A stretch of DNA of 64,000 nt from Blastocystis sp. Blastoise (lineage: Eukaryota; Protista; Bigyra: Opalinata): positions 880,499-944,498 of the forward strand of contig JBBPEB010000028.1 of NCBI GenBank assembly GCA_039096225.1, read 5' to 3'. The notes under the pieces were generated by a model, which was not told the origin of the DNA, did not search any database, and saw only the letters and a program-made list of their open reading frames with translations. Positions 9,861 through 39,900 of this stretch are shown here, piece by piece. Made by a program: the position numbers and the translations under genes. Within the stretch, counting starts at the first letter, position 1; every line of letters starts with the position of its first letter.

Positions 9861-11070
9861 TTAAGCAGAAATCAGTGCATTTCGAATAATAGTAGTGACT
9901 TGATTACATCCATCAATACAATTAGCCATAGATTGAGCACATAAAAGACCTTCCATTGTTCCTTTGTGTGATACATAAACAACATTCTATATATATATAT
10001 ATATTTGTTAGTTATTAGATAATACAATAATAATAAATATATAATACATATATACTCTTGTAGAATTCATATATAATATATCTGTTTGTCCTGTAGCTCC
10101 TTCGAGTTCTTCTCCCGTTGGATCTGTAAGTATAATGTCATCTTTTATACACTATATAGTTATATATATATATATATAGATTTATCAATAATAAATATAA
10201 TAATAAATATAATAATAAATATAATAATAAATATAATAATAAATATAATAATAAATATAATAATAAATATAATAATAAATATAATAATAAATATAATAAT
10301 AAATATAATAATAAATATAATAATAATAATAAAACATACAGTTGTACATCCTCCAAGAAGACCATACATTTCGATTCCCGCGTTAGCAAGAGCGGTACTG
10401 GCAGCAAGACAACAAGGAATAAAAGATGCTAATATAAAGTATATAAATAATAATAATACTAATAATAATTATTATATAAATTAATGAATATATATAAATA
10501 TATATATATATACACCCGTCACTTTCTAGAATACATATATATATTTCAACCACTGACTTTGGGAAAGAGTTAATATTAACACAAGGAGTTAATGTAGATA
10601 CTACTTGAGCAGATAAATTTCTAGATTCATCATCCTAAAAGAAGAAACATAAAATAGCAAAAGAAAACAAAATGATTAAAAAGAAAACTGTATTAAAAAC
10701 AAAAATTTTTAAAAGAAAAACTTTATTAAAGCCTAACTATTCAGAATAAGAATACATATTTAGTATTAAAAAAAATATGATATTTTATATTCCAAAATAG
10801 TTATAAAAATATACATACTTGAATACGAGATCTGTATTGTGAACAAGAAAAAGGAGCATACTTGACATCACACCAGAGTTTACCTGAATCGCTGTATTCT
10901 CTTGAAAAAGGAGATTCACGTGGACCAAAAACACTGCAAATTACTTTTGTATTACCAATCTCAATGTAGCAACTACCTGTAGCTGTGGATACAGTTCCTG
11001 TACATACGCTCATTGTTCGAATCTGATTAGTTTTTCTGTTATCTTTTCTTTGTACTTTATTCATCTCCAT
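9861..11070 (-). CDS. MTR3: Exosome RNase PH-like subunit, MTR3/EXOSC6-like (4 exons)
   Basis: GSCYIEIGNTKVICSVFGPR, CDVKYAPFS, FPKSVVEIYIYVLESDG, STALANAGIEMY. Confidence 0.85.
10190..10322. repeat. 12-bp minisatellite (ATAATAATAAAT)n in an MTR3 intron
   Basis: About 11 tandem copies visible. Confidence 0.9.
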
Positions 11071-11861
11071 AACTCCCAAGACTCTATATAGATATCTGAT
11101 AGCAAAATAATGCAGATAAAGCAATAATACCTTTTATATACGCAAAAATTAAAATTTCCATAAAAATTCATTTCATTTTTTAAAGTTGGGTATTTATCTT
11201 ATACAGTTTATGAGAATTCTTTATAAGCTTCAATTATGAATGTTAGCTGCATTCTACGTTTATAGGAGTTATTCAGTATAGTTTCTAAGCGTTTTTTTCT
11301 GTTCAATCATATTCTCGTTGCTAGAATTGCGTATTGGCATTCAAATATATTTATAAGAAAATGCTCTAGATTTGAAGAGTATATTTATAATTTAGAAGAA
11401 TACTACTTATGATGAATAATCACAATTTTGGTTTATTTGAATTGATTATGATAAATATGATGATGAATTAAACATCCTTAATGTGATACGAAGCTTTTAT
11501 AAACAGAATATTAGAGAAATCTATAGAATTCAATAAATACAATCAATGAATTGTATTTTTGAATGCTGAAAAGGGTATATATTTCTTTGAACAGTCTTTA
11601 TTTTTATTATCATTGGCTTACAAATATATGAATATGATAATATCATAAATAAGTATGTGTTTACTAATTATTTAGAACAATTTATTATAAAAAGAGAAAC
11701 AAAACATAAAAAAATGAGAGTCAGGGTTCAAATAACAACGTTTATACAACTATTTTATTTTTATATATATTTTTTTTGATTAAAAAATGTGAAGACAGAT
11801 AAAATAATAAGTTAAAAAAAAAGAAATAGAGTACAAAAGAAAAAAAATTGAAAAATGATGT

Positions 11862-36211: not shown

Positions 36212-36987
36212 TTATTATTCTTTTTTTTTTTTGGTTTTTAAGATTCTTTCAATATCTATATTCGTTTATAATGAATTAATATTTTTTTTATCTTTTCTAA
36301 TTCTAAATTGTTTTTCTCTTTTTTCAATTCATTTTTTTTCATAGTTTCTAATGTATCCTCTATTTTTGAAGTTTTTATTTTCTTTTTATTTTCTTTGTTA
36401 TTCTTTTTTCTTGTTTTTTCATCAAATTATTATTATTTTTTTTGCTTTTCTTTTTTTCCTATTTCTTTCATTTTATATATATCTTATTGCTATATACTTT
36501 CGGTCTCAACTTGCTTTTTTTATTTTCTATATTAATAGTTGCATTATTTTAAAGTTATCTTTTTTTTTAAATAGTTTTCAAAAATTTATTTTCTTTCAAA
36601 ATTATCTTAAAGAATACATTTTTTCATTATTTATAGATTTATATATATATAAATTATTTTAATGACTCTTTTGAAATAAAATTATAATTAAAAAAATAAA
36701 TATTTTATTCTTTTTGATTCTATACATGAATTATATATATTATTAACACATTCAAAAATTATAATTTAATAAAAGCATACATTATGTTTTAAAGAATATC
36801 TATTATGTAAGAGAAATATCTATTGAAAAATATTATAATATGATAGTATAGTGAATAAGTAATAATTAGTTCTAGAAGAATGAAATATACAACAAAAAAC
36901 ACAATAATTAGACTATTACCAATTCATAAAGAACACAATGTTTTATACAAAGAAACAAAATATAGAAAAACAACATACTAAGAATTC

Positions 36988-39900
36988 TTATAAATGTAAA
37001 ATAGATTGATTATTATAAAATTCAGCGATTTGATTTGCATCTGTGCAACTTTCAGGCTTCTTATCCTCACGAACACGAATAAATCGCGGGAATCGAAGAC
37101 CTATACCTTTACCAGATTCAATCTATAGAAATATATAGAAATATATAGAAATATATAAATATATATATATATATATATACTTGATTAAATGCACCTCTAT
37201 GAACAGGAGAAATTGATAAATCGGCAGCACGTACTTCCCAGGTCTATATATATATATATATATATATATATATATATATATATATATATATATATATATA
37301 TATACTTGAACAACTTCAAACCATACATCTGGTACAATGGTTGTATCAACACTATATAAATATATAATATAATATATATATAATATATATATATATATAT
37401 ATATATACTTATAATCTACTGGTTTTGATTGTACAATATGATCATTAAAGAAGGTAGAAAACTCCTTTAAATTATCATCAGAAAAACCTGTTCCTAACTA
37501 TATTTAACATATATTGTATTGTATTATATTTTATAGTATATTATATATTATATTATATTATATAATATATCTACTTTACAGACAGATTGGAATTGTTCAT
37601 TATCTACGTCATAACAAGCCAATAAGAATGCTCCAATTGTACCCTTACGTTTCCCTTTTCCGTACCATCCGGCAATAGGTACCAAATCAAAAGAATCACC
37701 TGTAGTCGATATATAATCTTTTTTCAACTATATAGTTATTATATATTATGTATTATTTAGAATATATAATAATAATAATAATAATAATAATAATAATAAT
37801 AATAATAATAATAATAATAATAATAATAATAATAATAATAATAATAATAATAATAATAATAATAATAATAATAATAATAATAATAATAATAATAATAATA
37901 ATAATAATAATAATAATAATAATAATAATAAAATAATTCTATACATATATACTTTCAGCCAATTAAGCGAACGTCTAGAGGGTTCATATTCAGCATTTTC
38001 AGTCAGTGTTTTCAGCATAAGTCCCTCACATCCGTGATCAATCGACTCCTGCAGGAAACTCTGAATCTGCTCGGTATCTGTAGCCTATATATATATATTA
38101 TTATTATTATTAATATTATTATTATTATCATGGTTTATAACCTATAAAAATAATGTATATATATATATATACGGCCATATGTGTAGCATACATAAATCTT
38201 CCTTCTTTCTCATGAATAGTATTATGAAGTAATTCCTGACGATCCTGAAGAGTCTTCTCTATTATACATTCTCCATTGAGATATAAAATATCAAAACAAA
38301 AGATAATAACATTAACTTTTACATCTTCTTTATTAACAGCCTATATATATATATACATATAATAATAATCATGAATATTCTAATATATATATATATATAT
38401 ATATATATATATATATATATATATATATATATATATATATATATATATATATATATATATATATATATATATATATGCCTTCTTTCCTCTTGTAGCTAAT
38501 ACTTGAAATGGGAGCATTTTCCCTTCTTCACGATTCCAAGCAACACATTCACTATCAAGGATACACGTATGCACAGATTCAGGAATAACCTAGGGAATTT
38601 AAATGAAAATAAAATAGCGAAGATTATATGTATAGATATTATAACATGTTTAAATTTAAAATAAAATGATAATAATAATAATAAGTATAATAATAACATA
38701 TATATATATAGTATACTTCCTTTAGTGTTTGAATAAGATCGGGGAACTTCTGTGATGTATCTTCGCTATTACGACTAAATATCTTTATCTCTCCTGAAGG
38801 TAACTTATGTATCTATAAATAAATATACAAAAATAATATTTATAATTAAAAAATAAATAAATAAATAAATAAATAAATAAATAAATAAATAAATAAATAA
38901 ATAAATAAATAAATAAATAAATAAATAAATAAATAAATAAATAAATAAATAAATAAATAAATAAATAAATAAATAAATAAATAAATAAATAAATAAATAA
39001 ATAAATAAATAAATAAATAAATAAATAAATAAATAAATAAATAAATAAATAAATAAATAAAATATGCATACTTGTGCTCTTTCTCCATCATATTTATATT
39101 CACAAGTAAAATCAAGTCCTTGAAAACGATCTAGTACTTCAGTGATTCCCTTAGTAGGCTTAGCTAACATAGGAACCACGGGAATACCTATAAAATATAA
39201 AGAATATACATTCAAGATTTAAAGAAGAAAAATATATTATATATATAATAATAATATATATATAATAAAATATATGTATATATACCAGGAAGTAGATGAC
39301 AAATATCATGTAATTTACTGAGTGGATTATTAATTAACGCGGGAATAATCATATCAAAATCAGGACATTCACTATATACTTGCTTAATAATATTTTCAGC
39401 ATCTTTCATTTCATCATTGAGTTTAGCATAACTAGCAACAGTTGTACGATCTAATATACGTGGTTGTCCTTCAATAATATAACAAGGAGTAAGAATTATA
39501 GCATGAGCAAGAGATACAAGAATTGTCTGCTCAGCAAGACCTACACGTAATCTTCCCTATATATATATGAATAATAATAATAATAATAATAATAATAATA
39601 ATAATAATAATAATAATAATAATAATAATAATAATAATAATAATAATAATATTATTATTATTATTATTATTATTATTATTATATATATATACTTGGAGTC
39701 CTCTGACAATATATTTGATTTCACTACCTGTACTAGCCACCATTAATCGCTTTATAATACCTATCTTCTTATCTTGAGACTTTGTACCCTATATACAATA
39801 ATTAATAATATATTAGAATAATAACATAATATAACATAATAAAATAAAAAAAAAATAAAAATAAAATAAAACTAAAAAAAAAAATAAAATAAAACAAAAA

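Follow-up and report, generated by a model that had tools for sequence, protein, structure and literature searches.

Several described systems resemble what is reported here. The HIP1 word of cyanobacteria (GCGATCGC) and the DNA-uptake sequences of bacteria are short, GC-rich, partly palindromic, over-represented words that occur independently of frame and strand; such words are distributed uniformly across the genome and have a known partner, a methylase or an uptake receptor. Transcription-factor sites within coding sequence, or 'duons', lay a DNA-binding word over the genetic code and bias the choice of synonymous codons, an effect that is diffuse in mammals. A CCGCGG or CGCG core, which many copies of the present word share, characterizes the yeast PDRE (TCCGCGGA), other everted CGG sites of zinc-cluster proteins, and the CAMTA CGCG box. 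Sites for E2F/DP follow the consensus TTTSSCGC, as in TTTCCCGC; those of animals and plants prefer C after TCCCGC, and gene bodies are not their usual place. E2F has been inferred for the last eukaryotic common ancestor, and the motif for E2F is the most over-represented upstream motif in the AT-rich gut parasite Cryptosporidium parvum (PMC4117751). The sequence ATTTCCCGCG is a standard E2F decoy or bait (PMC10055846). For Blastocystis, the only cis-regulatory element described is a 3' downstream gene element (PMC12129017), and we found nothing relevant in the literature on Blastocystis and E2F.

Here we describe the word TCCCGCG (complement CGCGGGA) in Blastocystis sp. Blastoise, where it lies in the final 64 kb of contig JBBPEB010000028.1, from here on the window. 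Blastoise is a tortoise isolate, from the tortoise gut, with 21-23% GC; the window has 22.7%. We tentatively propose, granting it a little less than an even chance, that TCCCGCG is a short cis-element on double-stranded DNA for which an E2F/DP-type winged-helix factor is the best candidate reader, and that its copies would be kept by selection on codons.

The word and its copies

Counted on both strands, the window holds TCCCGCG at 13 loci between 10376 and 39344. These amount to 14 strand hits, since 19378-19389 is a perfect palindrome. The loci, together with two variants, are as follows.

10376-10382, plus strand: exon of an RNase PH (MTR3-like) gene on the minus strand; antisense to the mRNA, encoding Ala-Gly (GCG GGA) in ...ALANAGIEMY...
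13898-13904, plus strand: intergenic copy TCCCGCGG with no open frame; 169 bp upstream of the ATG (13729) of a 416-aa minus-strand gene, and also downstream of the WDR55 stop codon
16870-16876, plus strand: intergenic, within the 232-bp divergent promoter region of WDR55 and TANGO6; same orientation as TANGO6, whose ATG is 73 bp downstream
18514-18520, plus strand: TANGO6 exon 6; TCT CCC GCG, Ser-Pro-Ala, then G
18662-18668, plus strand: TANGO6 exon 7; ATT CCC GCG, Ile-Pro-Ala, then G
19378-19389, both strands: TANGO6 exon 9; perfect 12-bp palindrome TTCCCGCGGGAA of two overlapping copies, Ser-Arg-Gly
19988-20027, plus strand: TANGO6 exon 12, two variants; ATG CCC GCC (GCCCGCC at 19988) and CTT CCC GCC (TCCCGCC at 20021), both Pro-Ala, final C not G
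20446-20452, plus strand: TANGO6 exon 14; TCT CCC GCG, Ser-Pro-Ala, then G
26247-26253, minus strand: large exon of an 854-aa Lys/Thr-rich gene; ATT CCC GCG, Ile-Pro-Ala, sense
31905-31911, minus strand: PDK1-type kinase gene; TCT CCC GCG, Ser-Pro-Ala, sense, directly after the kinase domain (…HPFF…SASPAPF…)
32431-32437, plus strand: PDK1 exon; antisense to the mRNA, coding strand CCG CGG GAA (Pro-Arg-Glu), includes CCGCGG
32793-32802, minus strand: PDK1 activation-segment exon; ATT CCC GCG GGG, Ile-Pro-Ala-Gly, near-palindrome TTCCCGCGGGGAA with its TCCCGCG copy listed as 32796
37085-37091, minus strand: DNA ligase I exon; TTC CCG CGA, the Phe-Pro-Arg of LRFPRF
39338-39344, minus strand: DNA ligase I exon; ATT CCC GCG, Ile-Pro-Ala

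The 13 positions given by a sequence-only reading of this DNA each hold the word or its complement. Its frame assignments were right, namely NNT-CCC-GCG (Ile/Ser-Pro-Ala) at seven loci (18514, 18662, 20446, 26247, 31905, 32796 and 39338), Pro-Arg at two, and Ser-Arg-Gly (19379) and Ala-Gly at one each, and so was its division into eleven loci in coding exons and two intergenic ones (13898 and 16870), the latter placed here from NCBI gene coordinates. When the database TANGO6 protein is mapped to the DNA, all TANGO6 copies fall in annotated CDS exons. Pfam/PDB matches bear out the names RNase PH/MTR3-like, WDR55, TANGO6, PDK1 (Pkinase+PH_3) and LIG1, whereas the genes called 'PAT1' and 'AT-hook' returned no family hit. 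The 854-aa Lys/Thr-rich gene carries GRP (AT-hook-like) cores.

Dinucleotide-preserving shuffles of the window give a mean of 0.11 hits and a maximum of 2, against the 14 observed. Markov models of order-1 to order-3 predict 0.09-1.6, and TCCCGCS is found 15 times in the window against 0.19 expected. One-mismatch variants of TCCCGCG occur near chance level: all 21 of them pooled reach 15, against 14 for the cognate word. CGCG occurs 23 times in the window; 13 of these tetramers lie within CCCGCG, and no common context was found for the remaining ten. G/C-only hexamers besides CCGCGG, CCCGCG and CGCGGG occur at most three times each in the window. In a distant relative with 45% GC, the word is not enriched (3 observed, 1.3 expected), and the TANGO6 copies are absent there at aligned positions.

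The window copies are sharply defined, with a consensus of about (A/T/C)T-CCCGC-G(G). CCCGC occurs 18 times in the window, preceded by T in 16 cases and followed by G in 14; the bases at -3 to -1 are ATT (8), TCT (3), TTT (2), TAT (1) and AAT (1). The base after TCCCGC is G at all 13 loci and C at the two variants. By extension the word tends toward the palindrome CCGCGG, which is contained in 7 of the 13 loci, the other six having A, T or C after TCCCGCG; two loci are palindromes, that at 19378-19389 perfect and that at 32793-32802 near.

Codon choice

In 1000 shuffles that keep amino acids and codon usage, the mean is 0.13 copies and the maximum 2, against 12 exonic copies in the window. Unrelated GC-rich 7-mers are not enriched by the same measure, and the others that are enriched are overlapping sub-words of the motif. 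Pro is written CCC in 9.5% of cases and Ala is written GCG in 5.9%, from which about 0.2 CCC-GCG dicodons are expected among the 33 Pro-Ala pairs; seven are found. The copy at 37085 uses CCG, the rarest Pro codon (7/346), within LRFPRF, the known and universally conserved ligase motif VI. Among the 27 X-Pro-Ala places able to carry the word synonymously, those preceded by ATT or TCT do so in 7 of 10 cases and the others in 0 of 17, a grouping picked after the data had been seen. What ATT and TCT have in common is a pair of T within the three bases preceding CCCGC, a feature of E2F sites as well. GC3 in the host exons is low (0.1-0.2), and a regional rise in GC is therefore absent.

The sequence-only reading had seen in the word a DNA-level signal maintained by synonymous codon choice. 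Within the window, this broad reading is supported by the codon shuffle, by the codon pairs and by the presence of copies on both strands, in different frames and in intergenic DNA; what does not stand is that every copy is purely synonymous. Ala is not conserved in relatives at several Pro-Ala sites, and therefore some residues may have been adjusted too. To illustrate, human LIG1 has Ile-Pro-Val where the 39338 copy encodes Ile-Pro-Ala. The likeness to duons is that of a putative DNA-binding word written over the genetic code in biased synonymous codons. Unlike the diffuse mammalian effect, the signal here is far stronger and simpler, a single word accounting for a fifth of the Pro-Ala pairs of the window and almost all of its G/C-only hexamers.

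Distribution over strands and genes

Copies occur on both strands relative to transcription and in four reading contexts, in addition to the two intergenic copies. Three (10376, 13898 and 32431) are purely antisense to the mRNA or the adjacent gene. With 16870 counted as TANGO6 5'UTR, the 12 non-palindromic copies split 9:3 between sense and antisense; this matches the word-compatible places, 45 sense against 33 antisense, such that the sense excess is as expected from the places. The 12:2 split between exons and intergenic DNA is likewise unsurprising, because sequences two mismatches from the word are 3.7 times denser in exons.

The copies are significantly concentrated in a subset of genes (TANGO6, PDK1 and LIG1). 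All 11 exonic copies fall in 5 of the 23 genes (p=0.008 by exon length, 0.023 by compatible places), and the word is realized at 12 of 47 compatible places within the 10.3-39.4 kb span and at 0 of 31 outside it. The density is about one copy per 4 kb of genic DNA. An even spread over genes and intergenic DNA was thus not found in the window, all copies lying at 10.3-39.4 kb. The proposed parallel with HIP1 and DNA-uptake sequences holds, in this 64-kb window, for the excess over both the compositional and the codon-preserving expectation and for the independence of frame and strand; it is weakened by the concentration in few genes, and the host here is a eukaryote. We know of no partner enzyme for TCCCGCG.

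Comparison with E2F/DP sites

The resemblance to E2F sites is closer than the sequence-only reading had stated. Invariant TCCCGC followed by G or C is the consensus TTTSSCGC(S) itself, with the T-run only partly kept; 16 of the 19 T-SS-CGC words in the window are TCCCGC, and TCCCGCG exactly reproduces the core of the decoy ATTTCCCGCG. The likeness extends to the T-rich 5' flank (ATT, TCT, TTT), to overlapping inverted copies, which are seen in some natural E2F sites, and to the pair of intergenic copies, both upstream of a start codon and one within a divergent promoter. Among the host genes, only LIG1 is a classic E2F target. In C. parvum, too, a GC-rich word of E2F type stands out from an AT-rich gut-protist genome and reaches far wider than a narrow S-phase regulon (PMC4117751), whereas that motif is reported in upstream regions of an apicomplexan and the present word lies mainly in exons of a stramenopile, an unrelated organism.

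Other features differ from E2F sites. Most copies lie in exons and well away from the start codon, at distances of up to 3.5 kb: only 2 of 13 are promoter-like and 11 are in CDS exons, instead of near the starts of cell-cycle or replication genes. In the case of LIG1, the two copies are about 1.2 and 3.4 kb inside the gene, and neither the LIG1/Cwc15 intergenic region nor LIG1's own promoter has the word. No obvious cell-cycle regulon emerges from the host genes, and for a narrow regulon the density of one copy in roughly 4 kb of genic DNA is high. After TCCCGC, G outnumbers C by 14 to 2, ATT is more frequent upstream than TTT, and the other E2F forms TGGCGC and TCGCGC are not enriched in the window.

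In the E2F/DP reading, a sequence-specific protein would read the element on double-stranded DNA, with TCCCGCG as its core, at times doubled into TTCCCGCGGGAA; a putative Blastocystis E2F/DP would be predicted to bind ATTCCCGCGG. Under strong mutation toward A+T, the word would persist only by selection, and it would arise easily only where coding sequence gives most of the G and C, as at Pro-Ala, Pro-Arg, Ala-Gly and Ser-Arg-Gly. Its mostly exonic location would follow from the AT-richness of the genome, in which near-cognate sequence is available in exons only. Selection would then fix the rare bases at third positions (CCC, GCG, CCG) and, where a position is tolerant, probably the residue as well. 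The copies gathered in or beside TANGO6 and the shared WDR55 promoter, PDK1 and LIG1 may constitute a homotypic binding-site cluster, which would set transcription or chromatin state.

Blastocystis is the commonest eukaryote of the human gut, and a protein-binding site of this kind would give a first handle on its gene regulation. It would mean that a move into exons is how regulatory DNA outlasts extreme AT drift. The genome would then be an unusually clean natural experiment: with a 22% G+C background almost devoid of GC-rich words, nearly any copy carries information, and the cost in rare codons and altered residues would be directly countable. A wider suggestion, which we think unlikely, is that the word of the tortoise clade is a genome-wide architectural signal, placed about once per gene in coding sequence over codon usage and sometimes over the amino acid, and read inside gene bodies. 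Its readers would be a chromatin or replication organizer, or a modification and repair system, and the word would then correspond, in a eukaryote, to HIP1, Chi or uptake sequences and not to an ordinary promoter element.

Alternative explanations

That a protein other than E2F/DP binds the word is somewhat doubtful. All of the DNA-level evidence is common to both explanations, and the gene-body sites, the strong preference for G after TCCCGC, CCGCGG at 7 of the 13 loci and the high density are at least equally well accounted for by another protein. Candidates are a zinc-finger or Myb-type factor specific to the lineage, a CGCG-box binder of the CG-1/CAMTA type, a zinc-cluster protein that reads everted CGG repeats like those of the yeast PDRE, or a general organizer of chromatin, replication or cohesion acting inside gene bodies. 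None of these explains the invariant TCC before CGCG; to our knowledge, no widely conserved eukaryotic site other than the E2F consensus holds the whole invariant core. The extra C in TCCCGCG and the flanks fit neither PDRE nor CAMTA sites, CCGCGG is not in every copy as a PDRE-like site would have it, and A follows CGCG in three copies (16870, 26247 and 37085), outside VCGCGB. It is improbable that the word propagates itself through DNA repair or modification and not through use, a methyltransferase or mismatch repair converting near-cognates or shielding the word from AT-biased mutation, as modeled on very-short-patch repair of E. coli and on HIP1. Strand and frame independence across coding and non-coding DNA, two CpGs in a word that is often CCGCGG, a cognate count matching that of all one-mismatch variants pooled and the high copy density all suit such a process, whereas the restriction to few genes does not, 18 others with 30 or more compatible places having no copy. 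Moreover, CCT GCT is the commonest precursor, and turning it into the word takes a T-to-G transversion, which T:G mismatch repair cannot provide, and CpG is only mildly depleted (observed/expected 0.78). The window contains no methyltransferase, repair enzyme or receptor gene for the word, and we know of no such enzyme in Blastocystis.

The preference for sense orientation and the position of copies 27-60 nt inside exons would also suit a signal read on RNA, with UCCCGCG as the site of an RNA-binding protein, for example an exonic splicing enhancer such as the long AT-rich introns of tortoise isolates would need. We consider this very unlikely: the sense excess equals that of compatible places, three copies are purely antisense, a palindromic extension is meaningless for a single-stranded site, and copies are present in only 5 of the 18 exons of TANGO6. 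Seven copies do share one frame and one dipeptide, as a codon-pair pause signal (CCC-GCG) would have it. This explanation, along with a compositional relic, GC-biased gene conversion or an assembly or polishing artefact, is nevertheless hardly credible, being already contradicted by the frame and strand data, with four other reading contexts and two intergenic copies. The low GC3 of host exons argues against it as well, and a relic would have lost its synonymous third positions to decay. Short reads had been used to polish the assembly (PMC12129017). Several copies encode residues conserved throughout eukaryotes, LRFPRF in the ligase and the Pro of IIP(A/V)L, which miscalled bases would have broken.

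Definition and abundance of the word

By its coordinates, the window forms the final 64 kb of contig JBBPEB010000028.1 (GCA_039096225.1). Its CutC exon (48857-49468) is, by protein search, 92% identical to a 'Blastocystis sp. Blastoise' protein and 67-69% identical to those of other Blastocystis subtypes. According to the genome paper, the three tortoise isolates have long introns, a GC content of 21-23% and genomes of 26-33 Mb; no motif of the TCCCGCG kind is part of its reporting (PMC12129017). The isolates are Rus-B (Blastoise), Rus-S and Hermanns, whose orthologous coding sequences are at least 56% identical at the protein level. 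GC content is 22.7% for the window, 31% for predicted exons and 17% for the remainder; no tRNA or Rfam family occurs within it.

All word statistics refer to this one 64-kb window, with an exon map that is approximate except for TANGO6. TCCCGCG, or its complement, is present at every position listed in the sequence-only reading, for a total of 14 strand hits at 13 loci, as against a mean of 0.11 (maximum 2) in dinucleotide-preserving shuffles and a Markov-model expectation of 0.09-1.6. Just over half of the CGCG tetramers in the window (13 of 23) lie within the word. CCCGC, which occurs 18 times, is preceded by T in 16 cases and followed by G in 14 and C in 2, and TCCCGC makes up 16 of the 19 T-SS-CGC words. 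Apart from CCGCGG, CCCGCG and CGCGGG, each G/C-only hexamer occurs at most three times, those reaching three being derived from a three-copy repeat. Single-mismatch variants are at about chance level, with the exception of TCCCGTG, and the three instances of TACCGCG mostly represent TCCCGCGGTA copies read on the other strand. The word thus has a sharp definition. It extends to CCGCGG at 7 of the 13 loci; two loci are palindromic or nearly so, and two copies fall between genes:

13898: word copy between the 416-aa gene and WDR55, intergenic by NCBI gene coordinates
16870: word copy in the divergent WDR55/TANGO6 spacer (232 bp), 73 bp upstream of the TANGO6 ATG by NCBI gene coordinates
19378-19389: word locus, perfect palindrome TTCCCGCGGGAA
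32793-32802: word locus, near-palindrome

No regularity of spacing was seen among the loci in the window. Longer common flanks, TTCGAT and CTGCTTC, each precede the word twice, which we judge compatible with codon bias and chance. The variant TCCCGTG has 4 occurrences in the window versus 0.33 expected. At 39177-39185 (-), in the next exon of LIG1, ATT CCC GTG (Ile-Pro-Val) relies on rare GC-ending codons and differs from the full word by one transition; this may be a copy that is weak, decaying or just emerging. A palindromic relative with A replacing G, ATTCCCGCAGGAAT, occurs at 56434-56443 in non-coding DNA, beside the sole annotated gene of the repeat region.

Placement in genes and codon choice

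The frames assigned to the copies in the sequence-only reading are correct. The 976-aa TANGO6 database protein (P0122) maps exactly to 18 exons, and four TCCCGCG copies plus two CCCGCC variants fall in exons 6, 7, 9, 12, 12 and 14; for LIG1, PDK1 and the other genes, single unjoined exons served as search queries. In these genes, open frames across the copies encode recognizable protein: ...ALANAGIEMY... in RNase PH, ...IIPAL... and LRFPRF in DNA ligase I, and in PDK1 both the activation segment and the kinase-domain end at HPFF.

The exon map behind the codon tests is crude and self-trained and covers 25 kb; in it, CCC and CCG account for 33 and 7 of 346 Pro codons and GCG for 21 of 358 Ala codons. 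Seven of the 33 Pro-Ala pairs are nevertheless written CCC-GCG, where independent codon use predicts about 0.2, and two more are CCC-GCC. The earlier proposal of a DNA-level signal maintained by codon choice was to be abandoned if the count fell within the codon-shuffled expectation or if unrelated GC-rich 7-mers were similarly enriched. Within the window neither was found: 1000 shuffles preserving amino acids and overall codon usage gave a mean of 0.13 copies (maximum 2) versus 12 observed, and the other enriched GC-rich 7-mers were only overlapping pieces of the word. The proposal is thus supported in the window, with the word far beyond chance. Among 27 X-Pro-Ala places able to bear the word synonymously, 7 of the 10 preceded by ATT or TCT do so and none of the other 17, a grouping made post hoc, after viewing the data; the two or three bases ahead of CCCGC would accordingly seem to matter.

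Copies span only 10.3-39.4 kb. Within this span, 12 of 47 compatible places, at which the word can be written without altering the protein, bear it, versus 0 of 31 in the genes on either side (1-10 kb and 40-51 kb). The final 13 kb have many repeats and few genes, which does not account for the missing copies in those two gene regions. The 11 exonic copies are confined to 5 of 23 genes, namely TANGO6 (4), PDK1 (3), LIG1 (2), RNase PH (1) and the 854-aa gene (1), a concentration with p=0.008 by exon length and p=0.023 by compatible places.

Level of action and resemblance to E2F/DP sites

The copies occur in four reading contexts, and include two intergenic and two palindromic or near-palindromic instances as well as three (10376, 13898 and 32431) that are purely antisense to an mRNA or adjacent gene. 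A codon-pair or translational cause is therefore excluded as the sole explanation. An RNA-level element is possible and less well supported: the 9:3 excess of sense over antisense copies is what the compatible places (45 sense versus 33 antisense) would give, and so provides no evidence of a strand-specific signal. Maintenance driven by repair or modification is also possible, again with less support, since the clustering of copies in certain genes favors a gene-specific role over a uniform, self-propagating word. A mobile-element footprint was rejected as the source, the flanks being alike over a few bases only and the length equal to that in L002, one of three distant, 45%-GC Blastocystis-like metagenome contigs (L002-L004). 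In our view the word is probably a site on double-stranded DNA to which some protein binds.

That this site is of E2F/DP type, settled in exons, is the likeliest specific mechanism, to which we give somewhat less than even weight. The textbook E2F/DP consensus is TTTSSCGC(S), and the invariant core of the word followed by G or C agrees with it. TGGCGC is the other classic E2F half-form; at the PDK1 copy (31899-31911) the + strand reads AAATGGCGCGGGAGA, so that TGGCGC overlaps the opposite-strand TCTCCCGCG copy. As an oligonucleotide, ATTTCCCGCG is the standard decoy or bait for E2F (PMC10055846). The E2F motif of Cryptosporidium parvum (PMC4117751) offers a precedent for such abundance of an E2F-type word in an AT-rich, reduced genome. 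Against a simple E2F/DP identity, the copies sit in gene bodies, prefer G to C at the 3' end, have ATT more often than TTT upstream of the core, and mark genes without a clear cell-cycle connection; in addition, the remaining E2F word forms show no enrichment in the window. CDE/CHR-type pairing of the word has no support in the literature searched.

An E2F/DP-type site would, as we propose, have settled in exons because no other sequence tolerates GC. To reach the word from intergenic and intronic DNA at 17% GC would take many AT-to-GC steps, and from a Pro-Ala pair two third-position changes. Exons hold two-mismatch neighbors of the word at 3.7 times the density of other DNA, so the 12:2 exon/non-exon split does not depart significantly from the prediction of mutational accessibility. 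At some copies the amino acid itself may have been changed as well: the IIPAL of Blastoise LIG1 is IIPVL in the human enzyme, and the Ser-Pro-Ala of Blastoise TANGO6 corresponds to Ser-Ser-Pro and Pro-Pro in L002-L004.

Comparison with other genomes

L002-L004, the sole related sequence compared, are syntenic with the window. The word is missing from them at the aligned TANGO6 positions, and TCCCGCS occurs 3 times versus 1.3 expected, which is not significant; that all three lie in orthologues of TANGO6 and the AT-hook (854-aa) gene has a chance of about 1 in 10. One TCCCGCG, at 8643-8649 (-) of L002, lies in sense orientation ~90 bp before the ORF start of the 854-aa orthologue, within chance for the composition. 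A complete ORF of 93 aa at 22951-23232 (+) of the window shares 73% identity with a 90-aa protein of L002-L004 and is missing from the NCBI gene list for the stretch; it is therefore probably an unannotated small gene.

Other candidates were set aside. L001, which encodes the Blastoise protein matched by the CutC exon, is the Blastoise locus itself, 100% identical to 38989-60248 (21,260 bases), and thus the same genome rather than independent evidence of conservation; L005 is the contig of the window and served for gene coordinates alone. P0126/L006 (45% GC, without introns, fungus-like gene set) and P0124/L007 (animal-like, with Ig domains) belong to unrelated organisms. Protein search, representative search and metagenome scans returned no match from other tortoise isolates.

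The repeat-rich contig end

The end of the contig (51000-64000) is rich in repeats and nearly gene-free, with direct repeats ~4.4 kb apart and periodic units of 244/488 bp; no telomere repeat occurs at its very end. The larger features are:

52.5-54.9 kb and 61.1-63.0 kb: large inverted repeats, 91-93% identical
52212-52268 (+): GC-rich element of ~55 nt, one of three nearly identical copies
56828-56884 (+): second copy of the GC-rich element
63145-63201 (-): third copy of the GC-rich element

The ~55-nt element forms a strong single-stranded-DNA hairpin (-20.3 kcal/mol, z=-6.1). A tie between this hairpin repeat (52-63 kb) and the word was rejected, the CCGCGG of the hairpin lying outside the TCCCGCG context. 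Every copy marks the boundary of a larger repeat and has a 14-bp tandem array after it; the element may be a mobile-element terminus.
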